Origin: Bigelowiella natans CCMP2755
Taxonomy: Eukaryota; Protista; Cercozoa
Length of the DNA stretch: 64,000 bases
Assembly: GCA_000320545.1 (NCBI GenBank)
Contig: ADNK01001313.1
Span: 27,457 to 91,456, forward strand
Direction: 5' to 3'
The notes below the pieces were generated by a model. That model was given only the letters and a program-made list of their open reading frames with translations, searched no databases and was not told the DNA's origin. Shown in pieces: positions 18,540-57,720 of the stretch; within the stretch, counting starts at the first letter, position 1; every line of letters begins with the position of its first letter. The position numbers and the translations under genes are program-made.

Positions 18540-19260
18540 ACATGCAATGCTTGATGCATATTTTAAGCCTAAACCAATCCACGTTGAGTTTAGACGTGTG
18601 TTCATCACTCGCTGTGTGGTTACTACCGCTCACATGAATACTAAGTGGTCGTGGACAATACTGAATACGTCACGATTGCTGGAGTGGAGTTTCACCCTTT
18701 TCAAAATTACTGCACTCAATTATGCTGACAACAATGCACATCATTGTCAACATGAGTTTTCATGTGATGATTTTCATGTCCGGCATTTTGCTCTAGAGCT
18801 AGTAGAATGTGCATGCTAGCATGAGATGCAAGATCAAGTGCAAGCCAAGTTCTCTGCTGCTTGCGCATCTAGACATGCATGCACGCATCCGCAAATGTCG
18901 CCTGCGTCATGCAGCAGTTATTGCGTTGTGGTAGCAGCAGACTAGCGCAGTTTAGTAGTACGTTGCGTGTGATGCCTATCGCGGATCGAATGATCAAATG
19001 CGACATCCCTAGATCTAGATAGCTAGTACATGGTCTTTTCTCCAAGAAAATTTTCGCATCGCTTTGTTAGCCTGTCTAGCTGTGCTATGCACTGATTCAT
19101 GATGATGAAGCACACATGCTAGCATGCTAGCACGTCTAGACGTACGTGTGGCACTAATAATCGTTTCAGAAATGCTAATCATTTTGACAAGTAGCGCCGT
19201 TACAAAACTTGGCTTCGTGATCTTCCTCATGCACCACACACGACATCGACACAATTTAGC
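18540..19260. other. Convergent-junction island (sugar porter -> <- 7TM-RGS)
   Basis: CATGCTAGCATG at 18812-18823 and 19115-19126; many CTAG, CATG and TGCA. Confidence 0.8.
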
Positions 19261-19288: not shown

Positions 19289-22200
19289 TCAAGACAGCAT
19301 CAAGATTTCCGTGATGGTACGATGGTGATCCTCAGCAAATCGTCTGAAAGAATCCTGTTCCATAATTTGAAAGATTTTTTGTTTCGCGCTCTTATATACG
19401 AGTTTACTCTCCTGCAGATACCTTATAGCAGTTAACCTCGTTGATTCAAAATCATCAGACGCGCTATCACAAAATCTAGCACTATTGCGGTTTGATTTGT
19501 CAGCCTCGGCTGTCACGCTTTGAAACTCTCTAATGTCGTGATTGCTCGAAGCAGTGGGCCCGCTTGAAGGACGAAGATAATCCGATTGTGCTCTTACCAT
19601 TAATATTGATGATTTTCTTTCAAGAATTTCTTTGTGATCCGCCTTCTCATTTTGTGGCTTCTCTTGCGCAATGATCTAGAGTATAAATTTCTTAATTAGA
19701 ATGCATGGAACCAAAGGCATGAATAAACAAAAATAACCTCGCAAAATGTCCGAGAGGCGGACATACTCCTCTCTGTGGGTGTGTTGGAGCGATCATTCGT
19801 CGGTAAGATGGCCAATGGAGAAACTGATTGCATAGGGTTTGGTTTAAGTAGTGGAGAAACTGCTTGCGAGCTTTGCCCTGTTAATATTTGAAACACATAG
19901 ATGTGAAAAGAATTATCATGTTGTTTGACAAAAGCTTTGAGCGCATTTAATCCAATTTCGAACACGAAATACTTCGGTCAAGTCTCAACATTTCTCTTAC
20001 TAATACAATTGTGAGGTGCTGACCACTGGCAGACACTTTTGTGGGACTATTCGGTATATTCCTCTTTTGAGAAAGATTTCGTGGCGACCCCCCACGACTT
20101 AATGCTAATGAGAAAGGGTTTATCATCATGACAAAATGAAACCATTTAAATCAGGAACCTATAGGTGAGATGCCGGATCGCTGGCCAATTGTTGCTGACT
20201 TCGAGTTGAGAGGACTCGCTGGTTTTAAGTTACCAATTCCCACCGTTGCAGTACTCATAATACCAAATTTCGTATCATCGCAAATATTTGAGTCATGGCG
20301 ATCAAAAGAGGGACTGTTAAAGATAAAATTAAGATAAGAAACCAAGCAGGCGTTATTCACTGGGTTTATTTACCTGATACCCCGAGGATTATGGATGTCA
20401 ACTGCTTCATATCTGTTTGCCATCCTACAAAATAAGGATCCATGTGTTAGATCACCAATACTGCAGTATTACAGTAACACTGCTCAGCGATACTACGTGA
20501 TACAGTAATGCTGCATACACTGAGTATTATGAAAAAGTATTCGCGCAGTATCGCCAACAGTATTGCTGAGTATCGCGCTATACTCATGATTTTGGAACAC
20601 GGCGGGTAATACTGTAACACTGTGGACAGTATTGGCGATCTAAGATCCATGTGTTCTGTCGTTCTATATTTGATGAAACATATGTAAGGGGCACCGTTTT
20701 GAATAAGTATTCATTATTGATAGGGAGCTTTTCCCTAAGCCTGCACCGGTGAAGTTGTCGAAATATTTGGAGATAAAGTCGTGTACAGCTGTTTCGATTC
20801 TATGCCCAATATTGATCTGGGACAGACATTCATACTCAGATGATCTTAGGAAAACAAACACCGAATTGAAATTATTTTTCAGGAACGGATACCTGACTTT
20901 CAGCCCTGCTTCCAATAAACTTCTTGTAAATAACAAAAATTGATTGATTTGTGGAATTTAGGATACTATGAATGTAGTCCTTTGTTTTGCTCGTAGATAT
21001 AAATCGTGGAGAAAACTTTCTACTGTTTCTTTTTATGTTTGCTAGAAGATCAATGTTGCTCTGGGTTTCTTTTTCAAAATGTATGATGGCTTTATAGAAA
21101 CGTAGATTCTCTGGCGCCTGTAACAAATAAGGTTTACACTTACAATTGACTATCAACGTACCTTCATCCTATTACCCATTCTTTAACAAGATGGCTTTCA
21201 AATAGCCTCAGTAGCTTCGGGTTTGCCAATATATGGACAAAGCTATAGCCCATCTCTGAACAAAAACACATATCATAATTTCGTGCGACTGTGATAAGTG
21301 ATAACATTCACGCAACCTTTTTGGAAATTTATATCAAAAGATTTTCGGGATCTTATGGATTCCTTTGTTAGTTTATATGGTAGCCTGTATGTGACGGAAT
21401 AATTCAATTGAAGTAGTCTCTGATTGAAGATGCTAGAACCATGATTCTGTCGCCCATACGGTCATCATTGCAAAAAACCAGTAGATATGGTATTCAATGA
21501 ACCGAGTATGTACAGATTCGATACTCTGTATTAATGAACATTGTTCATCAATATCTCCGGCGACATAATAGGATTAATACCGTTGCGAAAAGGTTGATGA
21601 TGAAGAATACCACTATTCCTGCATGAAAATTGTAATGGCAATTGATGATTTCATACTTCCAGTTGTCATCATATTTACCAGATGAAAACAATGCCATTTG
21701 AGTTTTTATTTTTAGCTTGATTTTGAAGGGATCTGTCTCTGCAGAGCTCGTGAAAATGTACCCGAAAAAGATAACCCTGCATCCAAAAAATTAAGTGCAA
21801 TAGAGTTTCGCTTTTAATTCTTTAAATCTCGCATTCAATAATTTTAAGTGTAATAGAGTTTCGCCTTCAAATCTTTAAATCTCAGGTATCAATAATTACC
21901 ATAGTGCCCATAGGACAAAGATAATTTCCAATAAACCAGTGTCACACGTAGCTTCATTGCCTTCAAATTCGTCATTATATCATGTTCATATTCGTTAGCA
22001 AAATCGTTGTGTAGATGGGAAGATGTTATCTCACGTTGGAAATCAGCTGATATGCGAATTTCTATGAGTACCGACAATGATGCTAGTACAAAAGTTCCTT
22101 GGATAATTATTGAATAACTTTGTATTGGATTACAAACTAATGATTATTTCGTGTTGAAATATTACCTACAGAAAGTGCAATAACTCTATTTCCCTTCAGC

Positions 22201-23033
22201 GACACTAAACATTTCTTTAAGAGCCAATCACTTTTCTATGATAATGCAGATTGGATGTCATCAGCTGCCCCAACTATAATTAGTTACATTTTTTTAAAGG
22301 AAACCTTTCTAATGTGGCTTCTTACAGGATCAGGATGCATAAATTCTTGTGCTTGCTTTGGAAAGTTACACCATTCGTGAGCGCAAGTGTGCGGGAAGGA
22401 GGAGAAAAGTACCTTTATTTGTGCAAGCCGATATAGGTGTCGGAGATCGCGGAAAACATGTAACCCTAGAATTTCGAAAGACAATTAATCTACATTCACA
22501 AGGTGAGTGAAAGACTACCCAACGCAGCTGCTCCAATGGTTTGTTGAAGAAGCAGAAAACTATATGTGATATTAAATATAGCGTATCATATGAGAAAACA
22601 TTGAATTATTTAGTTTACGAACATGAAACATGGCATCCGGATTCCAAGAATCCAATGTAGAAATCCAGGGACTTGCCACAGGAACATAACCATAAGCTTC
22701 AGTGAGACCTAAAGTGAATAAAAATTTTCATAGTTCATTCGTAGAATTTGAATTGCAATACATGAAGTGGGCGGTCCACAATACGCAATGTTGTCCTGTT
22801 TATAGCAACAAGAGCAGCTTATTAACCATTATGTTTGATACACGATGTATCAGCGAGATTTATAACTCCCCCAAAAGAAAACAATCAACAAGTACGTACC
22901 CCTTTGCCTCCAACCTGTGAAGTTCATACTGTGTCCATATCGATAGAGAGATGTAAACAATATTCTCGACAGCAAAATGAGCAAATTGTAGAATTAGGAC
23001 AGGATCCTTCGAGACGGCCGTGCTGTCCACCAT
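19289..23033 (-). CDS. 7TM-RGS protein (seven TM helices fused to a split RGS GTPase-accelerating domain), about 21 exons
   Basis: Manual splicing from ATG 23033 (an upstream ATG exists at 23176) gives 7 hydrophobic segments: VLILQFAHFAVENIVYISLSIW; VSLKLMVMFLWQVPGFLHWIL; PCFIFLLLQQTIGAAALGLHVFR; RVIALSVGTFVLASLSVLI; LLEIIFVLWALWVIFFGYIF; DPFKIK..MALFSSGIVVFFIINLF; HIYWFFAMMTVWATESWLP. RGS motifs follow: FVHILANPKLLRLFESHLVKEW|APENLRFYKAI, IYKKFI..ESQ|INI and, after a long insert, VYKSAKQKIFQIMEQDSFRRF. All junctions are GT-AG and in frame. Confidence 0.85.
20447..20643. mobile_element. 197-bp MITE (Mutator-like TSD length) inside a 7TM-RGS intron
   Basis: 17-bp TIRs TTAGATCACCAATACTG / CAGTATTGGCGATCTAA (1 mismatch). 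Perfect 10-bp flanking direct repeat GATCCATGTG at 20437-20446 and 20644-20653. Internal CAGTAT/ATACTG sub-repeats. Confidence 0.88.
21791..21897. repeat. Imperfect tandem duplication (2 x ~53 bp) in a 7TM-RGS intron
   Basis: ttaagtg(c/t)aatagagtttcgc..ctttaaatctc..tcaataatt occurs twice, back to back. Confidence 0.85.
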
Positions 23034-23645
23034 GCTCTGGCTGCTGAGTTCAACTCTGAATTAATCTCCACGACAACAGCACACCGATTGTCGAAGGAAT
23101 GAAAACAACTGTATTTCGGAAATCCACCCTGATTTCGCAGCGCAGCAAAAAAGAAAATAGCGTGGATTAACTTCATGGCTGAATCCGGAGCGCTTCTTTC
23201 CGTCCCACCCCAAATGTCATTGGTTGGGCTATAAATGCCATTGTAATTGTCTAAGCGACATCATAGCAAAGATGTCGCAGGTGTTAGTCATATCCAAACC
23301 GCCGACAGTGAACAACCGACTTGAGCGCAATTGGCCGCCATTTTTTTTTCTCTCGAAAGTGAATTATTCGCCTCCCTTCGAGCGAACAATTCAAGGAAAG
23401 TTGCCAAGTTAGTGCTACGAGGACATGTTTCGTAATCCTGATGTAGTTCCCGCTGTGCAAATTAAAGAGTACGTTACGCTCTGTGTCCTCAGCGTGCGAC
23501 AGGGTATATAGCAGCACCAATGGAGATTTCCATAGACTTTTTTTTCCATCCAATTGAGAAAGAGAACAAAGTAGACACAAAGATCTGGCTTTCCAGCGCA
23601 CACACACACAAGCCCAAACATTCCAGCGAGGCACGAAGTGGAACT
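23034..23645. promoter_or_regulatory. Putative bidirectional promoter/5' UTR region shared by 7TM-RGS and G-alpha
   Basis: ~610 bp between divergent start codons. Inferred from position only; no motif identified. Confidence 0.5.
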
Positions 23646-24725
23646 ATGGGGTTATGTGCTTCCGTGACAGATGAAGATATTCACAACAAAAAGATTCAGA
23701 AACTGTTGAAGGCTGAGAAGAAGTCATTCATGGATGTACAAAAGCTGCTGCTGTTAGGAGCTGGTGAATCTGGTAAATCTACTGTGTTTAAACAAATGAT
23801 TAGCATATATGGACAGGGCTTCAGCGAAGCAGAACGTAAATCATATAGGAGCATTATTTTTGGAAATGTCGTGCAATCAATGCAAATGCTCATTTCTCAA
23901 GCCAAGTATCGAGTTGAACTACGAAAACAAGAATTTACGATTAGCCCTAGTCTTGATGAGGACGTCAATACTGTCATGATGGCCAAACCACAACGCGGAG
24001 ATATGGATGAAAAGCTAGCTGAGTGCATAGCATCACTGTGGAAAGATGCTGGAATACAAGCTACCTATAGAGTTCGATCGCAGTTCCAGTTAAACGACTC
24101 TGCTAGTTATTATTTTGAACGGGTCAACGCTTTGGGAGCAAAGGGTTATATTCCTTCTGAACCTGACGTCATGAGATCCCGAGCACGTACCACTGGTGTC
24201 ATTGAGCAGGAATTCCTCGTTAACAATCACAGATTTCGAATGTTTGATGTAGGAGGACAACGAAGCGAAAGAAAAAAATGGATTCATTGCTTTGAGGGTG
24301 TCAATGGGGTTTTGTTCGTTGCGGCTATTAGTACGTACGACCAAGTTTTATTCGAGGATGGTGAGACTAATCGTATGGTTGAAGCTGTTCACCTATTTAA
24401 GGATGTCTGCAACAGTAATTGGTTTGAGAACACTTCGATGATTCTTTTTCTTAACAAAGAAGACTTGTTCCGACAGAAAATTGAAGAAACTCCGATTACG
24501 GTATCACCTGTTTTCCAAGATTACGATGGGGATGGAAGCTATGAGGATACTTCAGCATACATTGGACGAATTTTTGAGGATCAGAACGAGAAGCCCCATA
24601 AACGAATATATACCCATCTTACACACGCCACTGATAAAACAAATGTGCTGCGGGTTTTCGAAAGCGTGAAGGACACAGTGCTTCACAACGGACTAGTTGC
24701 AGCCGGAATCGTGACAACAGCATAG
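23646..24725 (+). CDS. Heterotrimeric G-protein alpha subunit, intronless, 359 aa
   Basis: MGLCAS (myristoylation Gly2, palmitoylation Cys4), GAGESGKST, RSRARTTG, DVGGQRSERKKW, NKED, THATD. One continuous ORF. Confidence 0.97.
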   Translation: MGLCASVTDEDIHNKKIQKLLKAEKKSFMDVQKLLLLGAGESGKSTVFKQMISIYGQGFSEAERKSYRSIIFGNVVQSMQMLISQAKYRVELRKQEFTISPSLDEDVNTVMMAKPQRGDMDEKLAECIASLWKDAGIQATYRVRSQFQLNDSASYYFERVNALGAKGYIPSEPDVMRSRARTTGVIEQEFLVNNHRFRMFDVGGQRSERKKWIHCFEGVNGVLFVAAISTYDQVLFEDGETNRMVEAVHLFKDVCNSNWFENTSMILFLNKEDLFRQKIEETPITVSPVFQDYDGDGSYEDTSAYIGRIFEDQNEKPHKRIYTHLTHATDKTNVLRVFESVKDTVLHNGLVAAGIVTTA

Positions 24726-25079: not shown

Positions 25080-25860
25080 ATGTCACGCTGTGTTTGTTTT
25101 TGCGCTTTCGTGTCATTCATAATATTCATGTTGTCATTCTGAAACGCAATGCACGGCACATGCTAGCACACGTTGTTAGCAAATGACTTACGGCATTTTA
25201 ATCTCTAGATGCGTCCAGACGAAAGATTTAGCGCGCACGTACGATGGCGAATTTGAAGCAGCCACATGCTAGCATGGCCATTGCAGGGCTAGCTAGCTAG
25301 AGGGTGCCAAGCAAGCGCAAGCATGCATTTGCACCCGTGATTTTTGCTACGTCATTCTAGCAATCCATTTCTAGAGTTCAGCAGTAGGTCCGCAGTAGGT
25401 GACATTTTGAGGTGTGAATTTTTTGCATTTTTCCTTCCAAGAGCAGTAGGGAAATTTTTTTGGGGTGTGGTGTACGGTCTGCTGCGGGCTATCGGGGGAC
25501 TTGCCGTTTCGTCGCTAGTTCGCTCGCCCACATCCACCAGTGTCTACCAGCAGTTCGTTGCCCGCAGGCTAGTAGGTTGCAACTCAAATGTCCGTTAGCC
25601 ATGGCAAAGCTGCTGAGGATGCGATATGTAGCGCGTACGCCTCCCGCATTTCATTCCTAGCAGACCATCATGTTGAGTATCATCAACGTAAGCGCACACG
25701 TAAAGTTGTTGGGAGTTGCAACAATGCAGATCGCCAAGATGCATCCATGCCATGACGGCAGCATCCGTCATGATTTTCACTATGCCCTTTCCTGCTTCAA
25801 ATGACACGCGCATAGCCCTATTCCCCCCAGCTAGCGAGCTTGACGCCGTAATGTGGTAAT
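25080..25860. other. Convergent-junction island (G-alpha -> <- LamG gene)
   Basis: CATGCTAGCATG at 25265-25276, followed by gggctagctagctagaggg and gcatgcat. Confidence 0.8.
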
Positions 25861-35149: not shown

Positions 35150-35910
35150 AATACATTGTCAAGTCGGCCTAGCGTCGAACATCATGTGCGTAAATCAGGG
35201 CAATATGACACCGAGAATCTGCTGTACAGCACACACGTATAGCGCTGCGCCCCATGTCTATTACTCTACAGCTATACACAGCCGGAAGGAACTGGATACA
35301 GCCGCTGTGTTGATGATGATATACGTTGACACATCGTATCATGCGCATGCTAGCATGACGCTATACCGCCATGTGTCAAGTACATGTGACATTTTCTTGC
35401 ATTGGTGTCCATGTAATATATTTTCACAGCGCATGTGACCGATTGACGCACGTCTATATGCCCTGGATTGTAGCGACAATATTATGCGCCTGAGTGCCTT
35501 CAGTCACAATATTTTGGCCGTATTATCCGTTCGGCACAATAGACACTAGTAATACGGGATATATATTAGTATCATAATATATTAGTATAATAATATATAT
35601 ACCGGATTACGAGTCTATTGTCGCGGCATGCGACGCGGCACCAGATCGACGCACCAATCTAGCAATGAGCTATGTAGTCAGTACCTTAGAAGCAAACGCC
35701 GCGGCGAGGCTTGCTGACTTGATGCGAGCTAGGCACGCAGAGGTGTGCAGTTATACAACTGGCTATAGCTGGGCATGCTCTAGACACTACATAATACGAC
35801 AAAGACACGTAACTCTGACTTTGAGGAAGCGCAGTAAACACGACAGCAAGATTAAATGTAAGCACAAACAAGCAACATGATCGCCATAGCCGCCACGCAT
35901 GAATTGTGAA
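35150..35910. other. Convergent-junction island (IPPK -> <- beta-helix gene)
   Basis: CATGCTAGCATG at 35346-35357; many CATG, CTAG and GCTA. Confidence 0.8.
35536..35621. repeat. 86-bp imperfect palindrome (hairpin)
   Basis: acaatagac (35536-35544) pairs with gtctattgt (35613-35621). The inner arms match 18/21 around an AT-rich loop. Confidence 0.75.
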
Positions 35911-44448: not shown

Positions 44449-47400
44449 ATGCCAAAACTTTGGAGTTTCTTTTCCTGCTTTATGCTGTGTTTCTTGAAAA
44501 CGGTAGAGCCTTCGTCAAAATCTCCTACTTTATCACCAAGTCTTTCTCCTTCCATTACTCCAACTTCGACTAAATCGCCTGCTTCATACTCAACCTACGG
44601 TCCCAGCCTCTCTCCACTCTCAAGTTCTGCGACGTCTGCTCCAAGTTTCGTCTCCTCCTCACCCTCCCAAACCCCAAGTTTCGTCTCCTCAAAGCCGACT
44701 TTCTCCCCGATAATAACTTCGTTGTGTCCAAGTACTATTCCCTCATATTTGCCTACATTTTCACCACGATCAACCTCATCTTCGCCGTCGCTCAACCCAT
44801 TTACCTTAACTCCCTCGACCAGTCCTAAAGCTGCCAGCAGCGCGCCATCGACGACTCCTACAATAGCGAGCAACGCCCCATCAAAGAGTCCATCAAAGAG
44901 TCCACTGACTTCGTGCCCTACTACAGCACCGAGTCTTCGTGAGCTTTACATTGATACTAATGTTAATGTATCTTCCATCGTTCTTAACCAATTTTTACCC
45001 TACGACATTACATTTAAAAATGACAGCAGTAAGGAAGGCACACTATATGCGGTGTGTGCCGATCATCGAATTCGTAAGATAGACTTAAACAATATGGCAA
45101 TAAGCATTGTCGCGGGAACGGGTTCGTCCAATACCTACTACGATGGAGCAGCAACCTATGCCCAATTCTATTATCCAAGAGGGGTGGACTACGATACCTC
45201 CACAGACACCCTTTATATAGCTGATACTTACTTCCACAGGATCCGTAGATTGACCCTTTCGAATCAGAATGTTTATCTGGTTGCTGGCCTCTCTACTTCT
45301 GGCATCATCGATGGGGTTGCTTCTTCAACTTCGCGCTTCTACTACCCCTGGGATCTAGCAGTTTACAAAAATTCCACTATGAATGACGTAACCATTTATG
45401 TAGCAGATTGCTACAATCATAGACTCCGGAGTATCTTCTGGAAAGTGAGTTCATCACGATACCATACGGATGTTGTCTCAGGGACAGGATCAGCTAGTCA
45501 TCGAGATGGCGCGATGAGTATCGCGTACTTTTATTATCCACGCTCTTTGACTGTGGACCAAACACTTGAAAAACCTGTAATTTATGTTGCTGATTCTAGC
45601 AACCATGTGATCAGAAAGGTAGACGTAGACGCTGGATGGGTGACAACGTTGGCAGGAGTACCTCGAACATCTGGCAGCGTAGACGGAGATGCGACAAGTT
45701 CCAGATTTAACAATCCTCAAGGAATCGCCTTAGATCTTTCAAAAAACCCGCCTTTGATTTTAGTTTCCGATACATCAAACCACAATATCAGAGGTATAGA
45801 TGAAGTTCACCAAACGGTGATGAGGATTGCTGGAATAGGAGTTGCAGGGCAGGAAATTGATGGCTTCGGCTACGATGCTAGACTTTATACACCATATGGT
45901 TTGGCTGTCCCGTCAACTACCTTTCATGTTGGTATGAAGCAATATTTCTATGTTGCAGATTACAATAATCAAGGGGTAACTATAATGAATAACTCTGAGG
46001 ATTGTTAGATTAAGCAATTGACTTAGTATTTGTTATTTTCAGATACGAAAGATCCAGCTATTTCCTAACGCACCCACTTCGTCACCTGCAAGCATCGCGC
46101 CAACATCTACAATGACTCCGACCACTACTCCCTCTGCAAGGGGTTGGGGCGTGCGGTTTGACTCAATAGACGTAACAACTCCGGTCCCGTCTGCCATGGG
46201 TACTGGATCGATACGCGGCGTTTGTGTTAATACCGAAGCCAACATGATATACATGAGTAGCCAATCGTATCACAGGATATACGGATACAACATGAGCTCG
46301 GGTCAGCTTTCTACCATTGCTTCGAGCTCCGGTTCTCCAGGGAGCTACGACGGGTCAGCGACGTATGCACGGTTTTACTCCCCATATGGGATGGAGATGG
46401 ACGCACACAGCGGAGCCATTTTTGTGGCTGACATCAACAACCACAAGATTCGGCGCATTGATCTTGTGACACAGACTGTAGACCGGTGGGCAGGTTCTGG
46501 GAGCTCCGGGTACTTTGATGGATTTGGGACGTTCGCACGGTTCAGCTCTCCGTATGACGTAGCTGTGTATCGGAATAGCACAATGAGTCAACCTGTGGTG
46601 TATGTGGCAGATAGGAATAACCATCGTATCCGGGTGGTACACGCGTACGATCGCGAAGGAATTCCGTCAAGGGCAGCTACGAAGGAGGTGAACTTGGTCG
46701 CAGGGACTAGTATCAGCGGCAGGATAGACGGTGCATGCAGTTTGGCAAGGTTTTACTACCCCGGCGGTCTAGCAGCTGATTCAAGTCCCACGGCGAGTCC
46801 TAAGAGGGCAGTTCTCTATGTTGCAGATACTTACAGTCACGTGATTCGAATGATAGATGTATCCGTGTGCGAAGTCACAACCGTAGCGGGCATTGGGTTT
46901 TCTGCGGGCACTTTCGACGGTTCGCTTGCCAGTGCTCGTTTTTCGTATCCGGAGGGGATAGTTGTCGATAGTACTAGGGACCCGTTGATTCTGTACGTGG
47001 CGGAGTATGGTGGAGACCAGATTCGCAGCGTAGACACATCGATCAGCGGGCGTGTTGAGACCGTTGCTGGATATGGTACAGGTGGTGGTCCGGCTATCGA
47101 TGGCGTTGGGTATTTGTCACGTTTCAACAACCCATATGACCTTGCGCTGGACCCGAGGGGTTCTAGATCTTTGTATGTTGCTGATTACAGCAACTCTGCA
47201 CTTCGCCGGTTGTCGTTTACCACAAAAGCACCAGTCACTTTGTCACCAATTACATCAAACCCAAGCTCCTTTTGTCCAACGGGCTTACCTACGGGGAACC
47301 CAAGTATATCGCCTTCATCCGTATGTCCCTCGACAGCCTGTCCATCTCTCAGTCCTACTACATGTGCTCCAAGCACACGCCAGCCATCTACTGCAGGTCC

Positions 47401-50400
47401 AGTAACATATGCTCCAACAACAGATTCCCCAACAACGATATGCCCTACACAAACTCCTTCGACAGAGTCTCCCGCTACTGGAGTTCCATTGACAGAAGCA
47501 CCAACAACGTGTCATCCGACGGAAATAACTATGAACCCTACGGCAACTAGAAACCCTTCGTCTTGTGCGCCTTCATTGTCGCCTACCCAACCACTAGACC
47601 CCCCACGAGTTGAAAGGCCGGCTCAATTTTCAGATACTCTACGGAGTCTTGAGGTGACGTTCTCGGGAGAGACAAACACCCCATCTGGCTGCATTTCTCT
47701 TTTAGCCACCTCCACATTGAGTACTCTTGGGCTCAATCCTACCTGCTCGTGGACAACTCGCACAACCCTATCAATAGAGTTTGGAATTGATTGGAATACG
47801 AGTTTAGAAGACTATGTGACATTTTTGCCAAATGTCATCCAAAGCTCCGATGGCTTGTCCTCGTTTATGGCATCAATATCTGTTGCTATAATTGCACCAA
47901 ATGATCCATATTCAATCCGTGCAATCCTGACGGCTCCAGCGATAGTTGGAGCTTGTAACAAGTTCAACATTCACACAGGTACAAGATGAACTTACAGGTA
48001 CATTCACTCTTCATACAATCCATTGCATTTGCTCAGGTCTATCCACAGGAAATGCTGGAAGGCCGTTCAGTTATTCTTGGCAGTATATCTCTGGAGGAAC
48101 GTCGCAGCTAGCTTCTTTTGTTGCTACCTCTTTCGGTTCCAGCATTGATTTCGATTCTAGAAACATAACGGTAGGATCTCATGTCTTCAAAGTTAAGATC
48201 AAAAACTGGTTGGGTGTCTCAGCTGAGGCAAACGCTACTGTAGAGAAGGTACTAGATGTTTTTGAATATTGGATATTTCATGTAAGATCCAATACGTTTC
48301 TTCCTGTTAGGTAGCGAATATGGCACCCGTTGTCCAAGCATCAACAGGGACAGTGTCCCAAATACGCAGCACGGAGGAATTTAGGATAGCAGTACAGGTC
48401 ATATCTTCGAATTGTAACGGCTCAAATGTAGGCAACGCCATTAATTTTGGCAAGTGGAGACAAGTATTCAGCAGAGACCCGTACATTTCAACTTCTGTAC
48501 AGTCGGAGATAAACAGTCTCACACTAAGCAAGGCCATCATACATGATCCTACGGGATTTAGTTTGTATTTCGCCCCGAATACATTGCTTGCTGGGCATAC
48601 CTATGGGTTTATGTTTACGGCGAGATCCTACCAAGCTTCCTTATTAACTCTGATGGGAGAAGGGAACTCAACTTTGATTGTTAAAGTAAAAGAACCTGAT
48701 GTGGTAGGTATAATTGAGGGAGGATCCTCACGGCTGATTTCGGTCATCAGTAATGCTCCCACCAACATTGTAGTCAACGCAAGCAAATCACATGACCCAC
48801 TAGAGGCTAGTGCAATTCTATCGTATTCGTGGAACGTAAGTATTTGGCATCCCAACGGAACAATTGGCCCTGTCGTTCAGAATCTCGACGGTTCAACATC
48901 TGAATCTCTCTCTTTCCAGTCCACGTTGCTGATGCCGAACCGCCTCTACCGTTTCTCAGTAGTGGTTTCGGGGGTTCTGTCATATTCTGGGTCCCCGAGA
49001 ACGGCCACAGCAGTCCAAGTCCTTGAGACAGTGAACATCGAGGTCCCACTAGTACAAGTCTCATACCTGGGGAATAAGGTTGATCCAACTTCCAAAGTGG
49101 TTATTAAGGGAATCATTTTAGATACTCGATCGTCGGGAAACATATCTCATCAGGACGCTGGATCATCAACAACGTATCTCTGGACATGCACATCCACCAA
49201 CCTTGATTTTACACAAAAGGGTATCTTGCGCTCTGCTATCAACTCTACAGTTCTTGTCCTCGCTCCAAATGCATTGAATGGCGGTGTGGCTTACACATTT
49301 CAACTGAGTGTCACAAATGGAGCTGGAGTGACCGGAAGGGCCTCGGTCACGATGACAGCAAACCTACCTCCGACGCTTGGGAAATGTGGTGCAAATCCAA
49401 GTGCGGGCGTAGCGCTGGAAGATACTTTCCGTCTTGAATGTTCAGGGTGGGTTGACGAGGATCTTCCGATAATGTTCAAGTTTCAAATTATTACGTTCGC
49501 GAATGGTGGTTTAGTAGACTTAAGTGGCTTTGGGGAAATGGTGTACAGGGACACAACTCTTCCAACACCTGCTGAAGGTACCACCCTCTCTCTGCGCACT
49601 ATAATTCGTGACAGCCTGGGCGCCTCTTCTTCAGCATATTACAATGCTACTGTGACAGAATCTGCCTCGTTTAATATTACAAATTCACGATTGCAAATGG
49701 AATCAAGCCTTGGTAACAAGGATACTCAGAAATATAGTGTTATCCTGATCGGAATCGCAGCTTATCTTAAGAAAAATGGGACTGAGACAAATGGCTCCTC
49801 TGTCACCGTTACAGAGGCACGCAATACACGGAACACTCTGATCAAATCTGTTCAATCACTCTTAGAAAACACGGATGGTTCCAGATCCGAGTCTGTTGTC
49901 ATCCCTGCTGCTCTTGTCCGAGATGCAACAGATTACACAGTTGGTGTTGAGATGACCACAGAAAGCAGAGTCAATGCTCTTAATATCGTCGAGAACATAT
50001 CGAACTCACTAATGAACGACTTCTCTGATGAGGTTGTCGTCTCTTCTGTGGGCGCCCTAGGCAATATTCTTGGATCTACAGTTGACAGCTTAGCCAAGAA
50101 TTCGGAACGCGAGACAATATCACGTCGTGTCGAGACACTTCTGACCCAGATTACAGCAGGCGTGTTGAAAAAAACCGTGGTTGGCGAGGATCCCACGGAA
50201 GTCATCACCGAAAGAATTAACTTAGTTTCACAACTTTTACCGCCGGTGGCTAGAGCAACTATCGTCAAATCTACGTCTGGCGCCGAAATCGACATCCCAC
50301 AGAGCCTTGGCTCTGAGGTGAATGGGAACAGTCCCGTGGAAATTAGCTTAGGATTTATCGCGACAAACCCCTACCCAAGCGACGTCCTTGCGACAGGCAT

Positions 50401-53400
50401 AGTGACGCTTTCTGTAAAAAAGAATGGAGTTTCAATCGGTTCAAATGCGGCATTGATAAGTCCGCTAAGGGTGCTCCTTCCGGTCACAGTAAATTCTCAT
50501 GGAAGTCGGTATTGCCGATATTGGGACACGAAATTAAACTCATGGTCGCTATCTGGAGTGCGCACATTAGGGGAACAACCGAATGGCCAGTGGTGCGAAA
50601 CTGACCACTTGACCGCTTTCAACGTAGCCCAGCTAGTACCAACAGCGTCACCGACACGGGCTCCATCACTATCGCCTGTGTCAAGATCACCAACAATAAA
50701 TGGTGAAACATTCGAGCCCACACTTCAACCAACAGCGGGTCCAGTTACTTCGGCACCAACTGAGACACCACCCGAACCTTTATCAGCACAAATTACATCT
50801 TCATTAGCGGGAATAGAGGTACTCTCTACCTAATTCTAAATACAATTTAATTTCATTCTATCTCAATTTATAGTTGTTTCCCTTACGCTAGGTATTCTTT
50901 AATGCCCCCACATCGACTGTAAATCGTACATGTTCTGGTCTTCTAGACTCCGCAACTGTTGCGAAGCTTGGCACTGGCCCAGAGTGTATATGGAAAAGGG
51001 CCTCAGTTCTCACCATCAACTTTGGTTTGAATCCTACATTGGTACCTGGGGATACGGTGTCTGTGCTTGGAGGCATCATTACAACACCAAGTGGAAACCC
51101 TGCAAAACCAACTCCAACCACCGTGTCTGTATCTGCACCTACATCTCCCGTTCCAATCCAAGTTAGCCTCGTGGGCCCTGATTTTCTCGGGACATGTGGC
51201 CAAGCCGTCTTGACGGCATCCACATCCGGTTCAGGTGGACGAGATGTGACATTTTCCTGGAGCTACACGGCACCCACAGGTGTTTCAGGAAACTTTTCTT
51301 CGCTCGTAAACTTAGTGGGCTCCAGTACATCGGCATCGTTGACACTTCGGCCCAGTCAGTTGTTGGTAGCAAGTCATAACTTCACAGTGATTGCATCCAA
51401 CTGGATTGGATCACAATCAACAGCGTCCTGGGTTATTACACGGCTAGAAAGTATTGTTCCACGCATTGAGTCGTCGTCTCCAGTTCTATCCATGGTGGAT
51501 CGAGACAAGGCTGTCTCCTTACTGGTTCGAGTATCTCTACCCAATTGTAATGATCCGACTCAAACTCTAGGGCTAACAACAAATGGATTCTGGAGTCAGG
51601 CATTTTCTACAAATGAATATGTTTCTCTTGGTGCTCAACAGTATAAATCAACATTCTCTTCAGACATCATTACGATTCCTAAGGCAAATTCCCTGACACT
51701 AAATTTGCCCAAAGATACGCTTAAAATGGGCGAAAGGTATGGTTTTAATTTTAGGGGAATAATCGTCAATGCAAATGGCCAGCTGATTGGAGACAGTAAT
51801 TCTACATTTGTCTTCGACGTAAATGTCGAAAACGTTGTCTCGGAGATAATAGGTGGAGGTGGAGCTGTCCGAATGGTACCTGTAATCCCTACAGCTACTT
51901 ATGTTGTTAGTTTTGACGCCTCTGGCTCAAACGATCCGTCTAATGCGACCTTTAAGTTAGGATACTTGTGGAATGCTGTGGATCCACTAAATAGGGCAGT
52001 TAATTTACCAGCTGATATAGCTACTGCAGCCATTTTGTACATGAACACCTCACTTCTCAAAGCCGACACTCGCTATACGGTATCCGTAATAGTGACTGGC
52101 CAGAATATCAAAGGATCGACACGAACTGCATCCGCATTTCAAATTCTTGAAACCGTGTCCATTGAGATTCCAATTGTGTCGGTCGAGTCTAAAGTGAAGT
52201 CCAGACTAAATTCTGGCTCTCGTTTACCTCTAACAGCGGAAGTGCAGAATTTCAAGTTCAATGAGCTCAGCTACTTATGGTACGACTAGTATATGATAGA
52301 TATGAGAGAGAGAGAGAAATTTTGAAAACATTGGTTTTGTGCATGCTTATATCCCCAAAATTTTGCATGTATGATAGGTCTACTCCAACTGGAAACTTAG
52401 ATTTCTCGGATCCGAGCACCCTCCTGACTTCAAATTCAGAGCCAAATTTGGTCATCGCGCCGGGCATTCTTCGTCAAGGAACATCATACACTGTTAAGAT
52501 TACCGTGACAGCAATTGCAACTGGCTCTTCAGGAAGTGCGACTCTAGATTTTACAATTAACGGTCCTCCAAGTCTAGGTGCTTGCCAAGCATCACCGCCT
52601 ACTGGAGACGCTTTGCTTACTTACTACCGCCTGGAATGCATCAAATGGGCCGACCCTGAGGGAGACCTACCGATTACCTATAAGGTATGCAATTTTAAAG
52701 TGAATATGTATTCCTGCCATTGAAATCGTCTTTGCTCAGTCAACATGTTTATCAACAGTTTCAGGCAGACCCTTCTGGCACAGGATATTATATAGATCTT
52801 TCTACAGAGCAAACGCTCGATTATTTTGAAACCATTCTTCCAGCACCGAACGCAAATGGTGCAGTTGTCAACCTCCGGACCATTGTGAAGGACTCACTCG
52901 GAGCGGCAGCGACCTCTCAGTTCTCAGCTATTGTCAATGCACGGACAATTGATGTCAACGATGCTTCCAATAGCGTGAACGATCTCATTACAAAAGGAGA
53001 CCTTGCAACATCTGGTGTGCTTCTATCCGGCATCGTCGATCAAGTGTCGAAGAATGCGGCGACAGATTCGTCAGAGGACTCCGCTGCACAGGATTCGGAA
53101 CAATCATCAAGAGCAAGAGTAGTCAGTAGTCTAACCAGTTTCGTTTCAACCGTAACAAATTTGAGGGGCTCAGCAGAAAGTTTGGGGACTCCTTCTATTC
53201 TGCTCCAGCAGGCAACGAAAACAGTAAATCCTGGAGGAATATCTCCAGGATCATCTTCTCAAGCCTTAAAGACAGCCAATGCAATCATCAATGTGACTGG
53301 ATTTGCAGGAACTCCAGCTCCAAAGAGTATTGTTGGCGTTCTGGGGAATCTCATTCTCGCAGCCGGGGGACGCAACAACGAGTCTGATGTAATTGACACC

Positions 53401-56400
53401 GTCACTAAAGCTCAGGCTGCTTCCGCAAATATTGGAGCTACATTATTGGATGGAGCACTTACGGGTGAAAAACAACGAGAAGTCATTTCTGGCAATTTTT
53501 CTGTTGTCTCTAGGCGTCTAGGTTCTAGAGAGATAACATCAGGATCCGGGATCAGAAGTTCCTCTGGCACTGCGCTAAACTTGTCCGAATCATTGAAGTT
53601 TAGAAGTTCTGGTGTGGACGTGCTCACGTCCTTCTCCGTATCCCCCACATATCCTAGTAACGATGGTGCAGGAGTGTTCTCGGTAATCCTCCGAACCCCA
53701 GGATCCACTGCGGATGCACAAGTTTCTAACCTGAGCCAGCCAATCACCTTCATTATTCCCGCCAGGGCAGAGATTAACTCTTGTGTGTATTGGAATGAAA
53801 CCATAGAAGAGTTCACCTCAGATGGCTTGGTGTACCTGGGCCGAACTGTGACTACTACGGGACTTCCGGCGATAAAATGTCAGAGTTCGCATTTGACATC
53901 ATTTAGCGGCTCCACAGAAATACAGATTAGCATTAATACTTTCTCTGCGAGTGATATCAATGCAAGATCGTTCAGCATGTCAAATCCAGTAATGATTATT
54001 TGCTTCGTGATTTTTACTTCGTACATCTTCTGCTCATATTTGGCAATCATGAAAGACCGGAAAACCACATCCGCCAATGAATCCGATGCGTACTGGAGGG
54101 AAACCAATATGCAGGATATCATTAGTAAGAGGGGCAACCGTTCCTTGAAGAATTTGAGTGAAAAAATATCTTGGAGCATAAGAAATGAACACATCTGGCT
54201 GAGCCCAGTTTTTCGTCATCCAGGAGACTTCCTCAGTAGCTGGAAGCGAGTCACAATTCTTTTCGTACTGCTGTTTAACCAAATGCTTGTGACTGCTCTG
54301 CTTGTAGGGCGGGAGCAAAAATTGCCGTTTCTGGACGGATTATTAGCAGCAACAATAGTAACGACCATCCTCAGCATACCGATCCCTTTCGTTGTTAGTG
54401 TATTATACAGTCGCAATCCCCCAGAGGCGTTTAAATTGGGAGCTGATGTGAGCATGCTTGTATCTGTTTTCAGCTTCTTATGCACTTTGTGTGCAGCCGC
54501 AATTCCAAAAGAGGAAGAGGAAGTAATCGAGTCTGAGAAAGATGTCGTTGGCGCAGCTAACACAAAAATCATTGCGATGGACGAAGACGACCTGGATTGG
54601 TACATAGACCGTATCGCTGCAGAAAAAGAGGCATACAGAGTTGATGCAGATTTCGAAGTAAAGAAGAAAAGAGTGAAGATGATGATGCAGTCAGAACAAG
54701 CTGCTAACGTGATGTCTGCGGACCATGCTTTAGTTGCGGTGGACAAAAAAGGACACGTGATTACGAAATCGGAAATGGCCCAAAAAAAAGAAAAAGAGAA
54801 AGCTAAAAAAGAAAGAATGAAGAAACGCAATAACCGGGGAAAGAACGGAGAGAATGTATCGAGTAGCAATCTAGAGAGCATTGAGATAAGCGATATTGAC
54901 GTTGGAAAGAAGAGTGCTCCATTCGATGAAATAATTGAAAATGTTGTGACCGGACAGGAAGGTGAAGCTAAAGCTTGTTACGGCGAAATATTCTGGAAAG
55001 CAAAGTTTAATCATCAAATGACAGTTTCGGATATATTTGTAACATCGCTGTTGATTCTGTTCATGGTCGGTGCCTGGTTTATCCTGGCTGCACTCTCTCT
55101 TACTCCTGGTTTTAACTCCATCAAAACTGTCCTAGGCTCTATCCTAGTATTCATCGAAAATTTCTTCGGAAGTTTGATTAGCATGGTTTTACTGCAAATC
55201 ATACTTTTCATCCCGCTTTGTAACTTTATGAATCGGTGGCTTTCGAAAGACGAAGAAACAGTGCAAGAATTGGATGGAGGTTTCTACATCCATTTCGAAT
55301 CCGGAAAAATCGGGTTCAGTTTTCACAAGCTTAAAGTTGTTGAGGTTCGTCAGGGCACCCAAGCAGCTCAGAAGGGAGTGAAAGTCGGTTGGCGAGTTAT
55401 CTCAATCGCTGGTATAAAGATAAAAAATGATCGCCAATTGTTCGCGGTGCTCCAAGAGCAGCATCGCCTGCAATATAAGTTTGAGATGAAATTCCTGCCT
55501 CTTCAAAGCGTTATCCAGAAATCAGACGAAGGTGTAGATGAAGCTCCCGCTCTTGGTCACCAAAAAGATGTGTCTTATAGTAGCCGATTTGGTACACTGC
55601 ATCATGCAGAACATTCTCCTGGTTGCACTCCAAATGCGTCTCCTGTGCAACCAAAGAGAAGAATCAGACCTACTGGACCTATTTTGCATGGGAGGATCTT
55701 AAGAAGTGACGCAAAGGTTGCTTCAGTTGGCAATAGAACGTCCATGGGTAGTGGTCTAATTGCACGCTCTCAAAGAATTTCTCGGGGATTGTTGTCAACG
55801 GCTTTGGTATCAACCAGATCCATTGCTGGAAACTCCAATAATGTAATGACAAAAAGCGTATTTACCGAGAGTGCTTATATTCCTGACGCAAACACAAAAA
55901 CAGACGTATCAAAAGGGCTTCCGCTCGTGGAAAGAAAAAAACGAGGAACTCGCAATAGACGAGGTACCAATTCGAGGCAAGTCACTACTAATAATAAGAA
56001 TCATCAAAGATCACAAGCAGTTACTTCAATAGACGCTTTGAACTTGTTCGATAAAGCTGTGTATGATGATGGAGCTCCAGAGCCTGCGCACATTGGTGGT
56101 GAGGAAAAACTGGCCAAAAGTCGTGCCGAGGGAGAAAGTCTATCTGAGTCTCCTGAATTGATAAGTCGCACTTTAATGTCTACTGGAATGCCGAGCCATG
56201 GTGTCTTTCCTAGCCATTTATCTTCAATGATTAACCCCCTTGCTAACACGGTAGCTCAAAATGAGGACAGTCATTTTGGACTTTCGATCACAAAAAGCAG
56301 AGAAGATGTCCCATCAATCCCATCAATGACACTAGATTCGCTCAGAAGGCCGGCGGGAGAATCCGATCTAAGAAAAGGGAATTCGTCACAGAATCTTGGA

Positions 56401-56661
56401 AAGAAGAGCAATGCGGCAACTCAGTTTGCATCAAACACTTCCCAATCCACTGCTCACGGAACTCGGAGTGCCCAAAAGTTGTTTAAGCGGCAGACTAGGA
56501 CCGCCAGAAACCCCAAAGTAGAAAAAAACGTCACTTCGAATGATGCTCTGGCACTGTTCGGCTCAAATCAATACAGTGACAGTGAGGAGGGCGATTGCAA
56601 AGACGGGAAAGAGAAGGAAGGAGGTATTTTCGGGAAATCCATGAATCAGTTTTCCATATGA
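44449..56661 (+). CDS. Giant polycystin-1/REJ-like receptor, ~3,926 aa, 7 exons (44449-45975, 46043-47978, 48037-48248, 48311-50818, 50892-52279, 52378-52684, 52759-56661)
   Basis: Exon lengths sum to 11,781 nt, in frame. Order: signal peptide MPKLWSFFSCFMLCFL; S/T/P stalks; two NHL-repeat blocks (YVAD-x-x-NH-x-IR); REJ-like module + GPS (YCRYW..WCETDHLTAF); second REJ-like module + GPS (CVYW..CQSSHLTSF); ~6 TM segments with the PKD1-type HIWLS..R-x-P..KRVT motif; PDZ (GKIGFSF..GVKVGWRVISIAG); disordered tail. Confidence 0.88.
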
Positions 56662-56739: not shown

Positions 56740-57720
56740 CAACTGGAGCCGCATGCAAAATGGACCGAATCTTTCTGAAACTGGGCTTTCAGGGAGATGC
56801 ACGTCACTGTAGACACAACGCTGTGTAACACTTTGTGTTTCAGACATGCTAGGACAAAATGTGTCTACTTTCACTTCAGCAAACAGCAGTGTTGCTCAGT
56901 GCTTAGTTACGCTAGTACGCTAGCTCGCGCGTTCATGCAATCATGACATGTCATCTAGCTTGAGTCTTGATCTCAAAAGCTGGAAAGACCAGCCGGCGCC
57001 TAGCTAGCTAGCTCATCAAGAAATCAATTGCATGTGCACAACGATGAGATGATGCATGCTAGCTGATGTCTTCTTGGCGTCCATCCCTAGCTTACTAGCT
57101 TAACACTAGCTAGTGCAATGAGTGTCACGTCTTATTCCGGCCACGCTAGCATTTTGGCTTAGCACATTAGTGCTAGAGTGCGGACGCACATTACAAAGCT
57201 AGAAAGCGCTAGAGCGTCTGCTATACACTTACTAGATGGGCTGGTATAGCTAGCAGATGGATGCGAGCTAGCGAGGGCATCGTCGCAAGCACGCGATGCA
57301 AGCAGGGCTAACTAGCTAAGCTGGCTAGCTGCATGCTAGCATGGTAGTAACGTCGCATTGTCTAGTTCTGATGAGCTAATGTCCCCGCACGCTAGCACGT
57401 ACAGCTAGCAACATGCTACATGTCTAGCAGATGAAGAGCAGATGTCATCATTAGATGTGTTGACGTTGTTTACGAATGAAGACGAATGTAATGTTGACGT
57501 CAAAGCCCAGCATCACCGCCATGCTAGCATGCACAGCTAGTTAGCTAGGTAGACAGCATCACCAGGATTCAGATGCAGTCGAGTCTACAGTTTAATTCAT
57601 TTGTCCATGCTGCTTGGACCTACATTTATTTTCACCATGCTTGCATGCGCATGTGCAAATACGCACTTTCCAAAATCATCTCCATGCGACTTACAAGTCT
57701 ATTAACCAAGCAAATGTCTA
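56740..57720. other. Convergent-junction island (receptor -> <- UNG)
   Basis: Strongest example. CATGCTAGCATG at 57332-57343 and 57520-57531; runs such as cctagctagctagctc and actagctaagctggctagctgcatgctagc. Confidence 0.85.

Follow-up and report, generated by a model that had tools for sequence, protein, structure and literature searches.

In a 64,000-nucleotide stretch of the Bigelowiella natans genome (the whole of which is here called the window), two genes of the G-protein system lie head to head. The plus-strand gene encodes a G-alpha subunit; the minus-strand gene, as reconstructed here, encodes a seven-transmembrane (7TM) protein that ends in an RGS box and is predicted to be a receptor-type GTPase-activating protein (GAP). 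They are divergently oriented with less than 1 kb between them, the ATG-to-ATG distance measuring 612 bp where the original prediction for this locus, which had also placed the two genes on opposite strands, gave ~610 bp (Table 1). No further G-alpha or RGS gene was found in the window, and divergent pairing is the default arrangement of its genes.

The G-alpha open reading frame (ORF) matched Pfam family PF00503 along its full length (381 bits, E = 6e-114, profile positions 3–333 of 333; gathering score 48.8 bits). It begins with MGLCAS, a lipidation motif of the MGxC type, and the GTPase motifs were all found: P-loop/G1 GAGESGKST, switch I RARTTGV, switch II/G3 DVGGQRSERKKW and G4 NKED, at positions that are invariant across the homologue alignment, as are R179, T182 and G184 of switch I. 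The residues that contact RGS proteins are likewise all kept, namely T183, G184 and the switch II sequence QRSERKKW, which we take to be the same as in Gi1.

The G5 box is the one departure, reading THAT in place of TCAT, with the following Ala, Thr and Asp conserved. A THATD-type box was seen in 1 of 120 homologues and TCATD in 113 of 120; the histidine is unique among the 120. This pattern indicates a variant residue and not a lost motif. The G5 position adjoins the guanine ring, and the histidine could alter nucleotide exchange. The protein thus resembles Gi/o-type G-alpha subunits in its full-length PF00503 match and in its MGxC, P-loop, switch I, switch II and NKxD motifs, but differs from them in having THATDK instead of TCATD and in lacking a CGLF-type C-terminal tail. 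Its motifs make it an unremarkable Gi-like G-alpha, lipid-anchored and RGS-competent, apart from the odd residue in G5.

It is 57% identical to its closest homologues, one known from a marine transcriptome and the other from an ENA metagenome assembly; among the named homologues are proteins of the chlorarachniophytes Amorphochlora and Lotharella. The gene in the window is intronless, whereas its Amorphochlora counterpart spans 7.7 kb. The ORF is also open upstream as far as an in-frame ATG at 23520, 42 codons further out (23520–23645); we rejected this ATG as the start in favour of 23646 because homologues begin at MGLC and the database form has 359 aa. The 23520–23645 stretch is probably 5′ untranslated region.

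Table 1 Features of the divergent gene pair (positions are those of the window; aa, residues of the predicted 7TM-RGS protein unless stated)
Feature	Position	Strand	Description
7TM-RGS gene, predicted coding span	19289–23033	-	20 exons, 2124 nt, 707 aa
Exons 1–10	23033–22900, 22795–22762, 22708–22623, 22559–22519, 22465–22413, 22235–22166, 22097–22035, 21960–21900, 21776–21679, 21618–21581	-	
Exons 11–20	21525–21440, 21384–21317, 21255–21176, 21117–20893, 20816–20695, 20424–20374, 20313–20159, 20104–19973, 19877–19738, 19675–19289	-	
7TM domain, exons 1–12	21317–23033	-	aa 1–278: short outside N-terminus, transmembrane segments TM1–TM7, basic juxtamembrane tail
RGS alpha1–alpha6, exons 13, 14 and first part of 15	20748–21255	-	aa 279–402; motifs APENLRFY, SQINIGHR
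Ser-rich low-complexity insert, 262 aa	19421–20747	-	aa 403–664; end of exon 15, exons 16–19, start of exon 20
RGS alpha7–alpha8 KSAKQKIFQIMEQDSFRRF, short tail, stop	19289–19420	-	end of exon 20
Insertion resembling a miniature inverted-repeat transposable element (MITE), 195 bp	20448–20642		in intron 15; 16-nt terminal inverted repeat
Divergent spacer between ATGs	23034–23645		612 bp
G-alpha gene	23646–24725	+	intronless ORF, 359 aa, Pfam G-alpha match
Switch I RARTTGV	24180–24200	+	catalytic Arg179, Thr182/183, Gly184 (the 'RGS-insensitivity' position)
G5 box THATDK	24621–24638	+	His where Cys is usual

The predicted 7TM-RGS protein

The splice model of the minus-strand gene was built by hand and by dynamic programming, from the sequence alone and without guidance from homologues. 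For the membrane exons, canonical GT–AG paths were enumerated and the joined frame was checked; for the 3′ half, dynamic programming was run with the MITE-like element masked. The predicted model starts with the ATG at 23033 and stays open in a single frame until the stop at 19289, and this independent rebuild arrived at essentially the same gene as the ~21-exon one first proposed. All 19 introns are GT–AG; 18 of them measure 53–177 nt and the one that bears the MITE-like insertion 270 nt. Exons are richer in GC than introns (41.1% vs 33.8%), and codon scores sum to +19 for the frame of the model vs −274 and −297 for its two alternatives. A canonical donor, GTTCGT at 22622, links TM2 to TM3. 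The exact exon borders are those of the prediction. Dynamic programming on codon usage alone, trained on the long soluble ORFs of the window, was rejected for the membrane part, where it misframed several TM exons, but gave stable results over the 3′ half, with its RGS and C-terminal exons.

Kyte–Doolittle hydropathy (19-residue window) of the spliced protein revealed seven hydrophobic segments. Six are strong (aa 12–30, 61–79, 84–102, 135–153, 170–188 and 208–226, with peaks of 1.6–2.4), while TM7, HIYWFFAMMTVWATESWL at about aa 238–256, is weaker and rich in Trp and Tyr. TM3, TM4, TM5 and TM6 each run in phase over a splice junction, as in ...FVLWAL / W / VIFFGYIFT, where a TGG codon is split. 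Lysine and arginine residues number 5+8+4+6 = 23 in the predicted cytosolic loops vs 1+1+1+1 = 4 in the N-terminus and outer loops. The positive-inside rule had not been among the criteria used in building the model, so that this count is an independent check of it; the count speaks for the exons chosen and for an N-out/C-in topology, with the RGS box predicted to be cytosolic. In this topology, Cys83 would lie in outer loop 1 and Cys166 in outer loop 2; many 7TM receptors have a disulphide between these two loops.

RGS homology was scored for single exons or ORFs, not for the joined spliced protein, against Pfam PF00615 (gathering score 23.9 bits). RGS was the best Pfam family for two of them, the exon-14 ORF (E = 0.018, 15.9 bits, profile positions 25–70) and the last exon (E = 0.0035–0.005, 17.7–18.2 bits, profile positions 81–111), each below the cut-off when taken alone. 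On the profile, one piece follows the other in collinear order and complements it. For single exons, the profile check attached to the original prediction gave RGS as the best family at scores short of the Pfam threshold. Exons 13, 15, 17 and 19, each too short, gave no Pfam match singly. Against the PDB, phmmer aligned the last exon, whose C-terminal sequence is ...LVYKSAKQKIFQIMEQDSFRRFAED, to alpha7–alpha8 of RGS4 (E = 0.009), and RGS proteins made up 12 of its 13 PDB matches.

Exons 13–15, reading ...FVHILANPKLLRLFESHLVKEW / APENLRFYKAIIHF ... IFVIYKKFIGSRAESQ / INIGHRIETAV..., follow the alpha1–alpha6 pattern of an RGS box. Residues expected to contact G-alpha are present in the model as the E and N of APENL, the N of QINIG and the D..RR of EQDSFRRF; the last was aligned to RGS4 by HMMER and the first two were placed by eye via their spacing. 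Presumably these correspond to E87/N88, N128 (alpha5–alpha6 loop) and D163/R167 (alpha7–alpha8) of RGS4, and the spacing FI-x7-INI in the translated model to what we take to be FI-x7-VNL in that protein. The ENLxFW signature occurs at a single place in the window, in these RGS exons. The 7TM domain and RGS box that had been proposed for this strand thus hold up, with six strong and one weaker TM segment placed N-terminal to the collinear RGS pieces in one predicted polypeptide, an architecture like that of plant AtRGS1. By these features, the minus-strand gene is a 7TM-RGS receptor-type GAP, its GAP function being a prediction.

Several observations concern the splicing of this gene. Tandem donors 4 nt apart lie at the ends of exon 1 (22896–22899; GTAC/GTAC) and exon 3 (22619–22622; GTTC/GTAA), and the membrane helices stay in frame with just one donor of each pair. 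Intron 9 (21619–21678, 60 nt) is in frame and stop-free, and its retention would add 20 residues ahead of TM6. Intron 8 contains a tandem duplication (21782–21883) of 49-nt copies at 53-nt spacing that are 84% identical. The terminal inverted repeat of the MITE-like element, TAGATCRCCAATACTG, occurs exactly twice in the window vs 0.06 expected, and a direct repeat, ATCCATGTGT, stands on both flanks of the element (20438–20447 and 20643–20652) and resembles a target-site duplication.

Linkage of the two genes

The original prediction had gone further and read the two genes as cognate partners under the joint control of a bidirectional promoter, in an 'operon-like' arrangement. That term is a misnomer, since divergent genes such as these would each have a transcript of their own. 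The switch-I glycine, which had been pointed to as needed for RGS sensitivity, is indeed present, but it is kept in 119 of 120 G-alpha homologues and so says nothing about pairing.

We looked for the linkage in relatives, at the closest G-alpha homologues that lie on long contigs, which are 40–57% identical to the G-alpha of the window and whose orthology is uncertain. Five distinct loci were covered. Amorphochlora amoebiformis and a further metagenome supplied one each, and the other three are paralogues from the KOPF15 metagenome (57, 54 and 50% identity). The KOPF15 paralogues are the nearest relatives with genomic context. In their ENA samples (ERZ23491473 and ERZ23491500), one uncultured, intron-poor eukaryote carries at least three G-alpha paralogues 50–57% identical to that of the window. 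None of the five loci had an RGS Pfam match within 10 kb on either side. The divergent upstream neighbours, all unrelated or unassigned, encode an HbpS-like protein, a 419-aa protein without a Pfam match, a tRNA synthetase, two short ORFs without a Pfam match (a ubiquitin hydrolase on a second contig of the same gene) and a 280-aa protein, also without a Pfam match.

A scan of JGI metagenome contigs added 80 G-alpha loci, 11 of them on at least 4 kb. We screened for two RGS signatures, ENLxFWxxVxxF and LxxDSYxRF, both of which were recovered at the expected places in the window. The two motifs together were found at none of the 89 G-alpha loci fetched, of which 20 (~18 distinct places) were at least 4 kb long. 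The synteny check set in advance for the original prediction therefore went against it as far as these loci reach, with no RGS neighbour at five loci by Pfam and at ~18 by motifs, the orthology of these genes being uncertain. With a generic glycine, divergence as the default and no RGS neighbour in relatives, we found no support for a co-regulated cognate pair.

These results fit best with two intact genes of the G-protein system, a 7TM-RGS GAP and a G-alpha, whose adjacency is probably incidental. In B. natans, RGS genes number 39 and G-alpha has undergone a lineage-specific expansion (PMC3971589), and two members of such expanded families would have met in a compact, divergently organised genome. 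The chance estimate for the linkage is suggestive, not significant.

Several points weigh against this reading. The signature screen was crude and may miss RGS genes that are divergent or split by introns; the relatives are distant, at 40–57% identity, are maybe not orthologues, and were mostly gene-called as if prokaryotic. If B. natans has ~21,700 genes, a count that we assume, the chance that a given G-alpha has an RGS gene as an immediate neighbour is 2 × 39/21,700, or ~0.4%, and the chance of one such pair in the whole genome ranges from a few per cent up to ~15%, set by the number of G-alpha genes, which leaves some room for selection on the linkage. For the gene itself, the 20-exon model is a prediction that draws on sequence only, and exon 14 (75 aa) had no match at E ≤ 0.001 in a phmmer search of 1.84 billion representative proteins.

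A selected cognate module is the alternative that survives best, though we regard it as rather unlikely. In such a module, the 7TM-RGS protein would be the dedicated receptor-GAP of a (possibly self-activating) G-alpha, and the 612-bp spacer would act as a bidirectional promoter for stoichiometric co-expression. The matching functions, the head-to-head orientation and the short spacer all argue for it, as does the presence of every RGS-contact residue in the G-alpha and of the contact residues of the RGS box; the prior chance of an RGS neighbour for a given G-alpha is below 1%, and the palindrome clusters and non-coding DNA on both sides (described below) make the pair look like an isolated two-gene unit. 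However, the linkage is kept at no related G-alpha locus examined, the RGS-contact residues are generic, and divergent pairing is the rule in the window. Many DNA windows were screened for matching neighbours, moreover, and one chance pair is to be expected from such a screen. In Naegleria, which has 28 7TM-RGS genes and is the one protist in which several of their RGS boxes were assayed against several G-alphas, the specificities overlap (PMC9283941), and this overlap argues against one-to-one pairs as a rule. Doubtful to a greater degree is the fullest form of this idea, a selected unit in which a receptor-GAP and its own G-alpha share one divergent promoter and the Ser-rich loop works as a phospho-switch that gates GAP activity. 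If true, it would make this pair the first cognate 7TM-RGS/G-alpha module with physical linkage, and genome position could then serve to assign partners in the large G-alpha and RGS families of protists.

Short divergent spacers often bring some co-expression, and incidental neighbours sharing these 612 bp could show it too. A receptor-GAP/substrate relationship specific to this pair is conceivable. We found no description in the literature that we searched of a head-to-head, bidirectional G-alpha/RGS gene pair, and a term search of the Naegleria paper (PMC9283941) found no mention of genomic linkage. The linkage is a lead, not a finding.

The predicted insert in the RGS box

The RGS domain is usually a contiguous nine-helix bundle of ~120 aa. 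The model departs from this, with 262 aa (15.6% Ser) between alpha6 and alpha7. On the insert strand, stop-free runs reach 128, 93, 72 and 67 codons, a sum matched by 3 of 2000 shuffles (p ~0.0015), while no run on the opposite strand exceeds 65 codons. The exon chain of the 3′ half was unchanged in six of eight parameter settings; a further setting left out exons 16 and 18, and in two the last exon was divided. Because the stop-free runs exceed those of shuffles and six of the eight settings gave the same chain, the insert stretch is very likely coding. It probably forms a disordered loop and, by analogy with AtRGS1, may be a regulatory region subject to phosphorylation. No RGS box with an internal insert this long was described in the literature that we searched; yeast Sst2 presumably has a shorter one.

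Two other readings of this stretch were rejected. An alternative frame after exon 15 (WQTDMKQLTSIILGVS / PLLIAMTQIFAMI) would interrupt the RGS box midway with an eighth hydrophobic helix; the Ser-rich frame was preferred as the longer one, which also stays open in the exons that follow. The sequence YEAVDIHNPRGISPSFDRH (exons 16/17) was considered as a local alpha7, but contains the helix-breaking NPRG and has no hydrophobic pattern; alpha7–alpha8 lie in the last exon.

The insert bears on whether the gene is what it seems. Conceivably the model is badly wrong, the TM part and the RGS/Ser-rich part being separate genes or the RGS box being decayed, so that no functional 7TM-RGS protein is made. 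Consistent with such an error are the RGS pieces that each score below the Pfam cut-off, the lack of any match of exon 14 in the PDB as well as in the representative proteins, the 262 aa between alpha6 and alpha7 with a MITE in the adjoining intron, the several TM exons that codon-usage-only dynamic programming put in other frames, and the weakness of TM7. We nevertheless think it quite improbable: one continuous frame with canonical splice sites leads from ATG to stop, hydrophobic helices stay in phase over four junctions, the positive-inside rule is obeyed (23 vs 4), the insert region is open beyond chance, the GAP-contact residues are all kept on both sides of the insert, and the MITE is intronic, not exonic.

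Least probable of all, and very much so, is that the Ser-rich exons (16–19 and the first part of 20) are partly skipped, giving a mature protein with a compact RGS box and leaving the insert to an alternative or regulated isoform: RGS boxes are normally contiguous, a candidate acceptor (ctgcag/GAG, ~19401) lies just upstream of the alpha7 codons, and a high intron penalty in the dynamic programming removed exons 16 and 18, but the insert is stop-free beyond chance, no strong in-phase exon-15 donor fits that acceptor unless the alpha6–alpha7 link is ~7 residues shorter, and six of the eight settings retained every Ser-rich exon.

Known systems and genomic surroundings

7TM-RGS proteins are known from plants (AtRGS1; PMC3386157), Trichomonas (PMC3865004), Naegleria (PMC9283941) and fungi, as class VI G-protein-coupled receptors (GPCRs; PMC10794492), and were reported in 'many bikonts' by a survey that had B. 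natans in its taxon set (PMC3971589). The architecture is therefore already known, and the gene in the window adds a member to it.

If, as we prefer, the two genes are a working GAP and a working G-alpha that stand side by side by chance, the 7TM protein would sit in the plasma membrane with its N-terminus outside and its C-terminal RGS box in the cytosol. There, the RGS box would bind the switch regions of GTP-bound G-alpha and speed GTP hydrolysis, making the protein a membrane-anchored GAP in the manner of AtRGS1 and of the 7TM-RGS proteins of Naegleria and Trichomonas. Its targets would be one or more G-alpha subunits, the neighbouring one possibly included. The Ser-rich loop between alpha6 and alpha7 would be a candidate regulatory region, by analogy with the Ser cluster of AtRGS1, which is phosphorylated (PMC5575782).

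The likeness to AtRGS1 and its self-activating partner AtGPA1 (PMC3386157, PMC3718340) extends to the seven N-terminal TM segments, the short N-terminus, the predicted cytosolic RGS box, a Ser-rich region that could serve phospho-regulation and a presumed receptor-type GAP role. In AtRGS1, however, the Ser cluster comes after an uninterrupted RGS box, whereas the predicted protein in the window has 262 aa inside the box, and plants have one such gene where this genome has several RGS genes. The proteins of Naegleria fowleri and Trichomonas vaginalis (PMC9283941, PMC3865004) are, like the present one, protist 7TM-RGS proteins with a C-terminal RGS domain; their GAP activity extends to several G-alpha subunits and requires the switch-I glycine, which the G-alpha in the window has. 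Many of those in Naegleria differ in carrying large extracellular domains (EGF, lectin, GPS), where the present protein has ~11 residues outside, and their coupling is overlapping and not one-to-one. Fungal class VI GPCRs (GprK/AoGprK; PMC10794492) share the domain order, and GTPase-activating activity was shown for them, but they belong to the opisthokont lineage.

In GEF-independent G-protein signalling, that is, signalling without a guanine-nucleotide exchange factor (GEF), a 7TM-RGS protein is the proposed 'receptor'. To our knowledge, AtRGS1 and GPA1 are not neighbouring genes, and in protists with dozens of G-alpha and RGS genes the working partners have yet to be assigned. Were linkage to mark true partners, it would offer a cheap way of predicting them, and this pair would be an obvious first rhizarian test case. 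In any event, the locus adds to these expanded families a well-formed 7TM-RGS gene with an unusual RGS insert and a G-alpha with a rare G5 residue.

The 3′ flanks of both genes are non-coding, microsatellite-rich DNA with clusters of a palindrome, ATGCTAGCAT. Counting both strands, it occurs 14 times in the window vs 0.78 expected, an 18-fold over-representation, at 18813–18822, 19116–19132, 25160–25275, 35347–35356 and 57333–57530. Clusters lie a few hundred bases past the stop codons of the 7TM-RGS, G-alpha and polycystin-like genes, and the palindrome may be a motif of the 3′-end/termination region or a small repeat. The last of these genes, a very large one for a polycystin-1-like receptor (44449–56661), lies ~20 kb from the G-alpha gene. 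Animal polycystin-1 reportedly binds an RGS protein and couples to G proteins.

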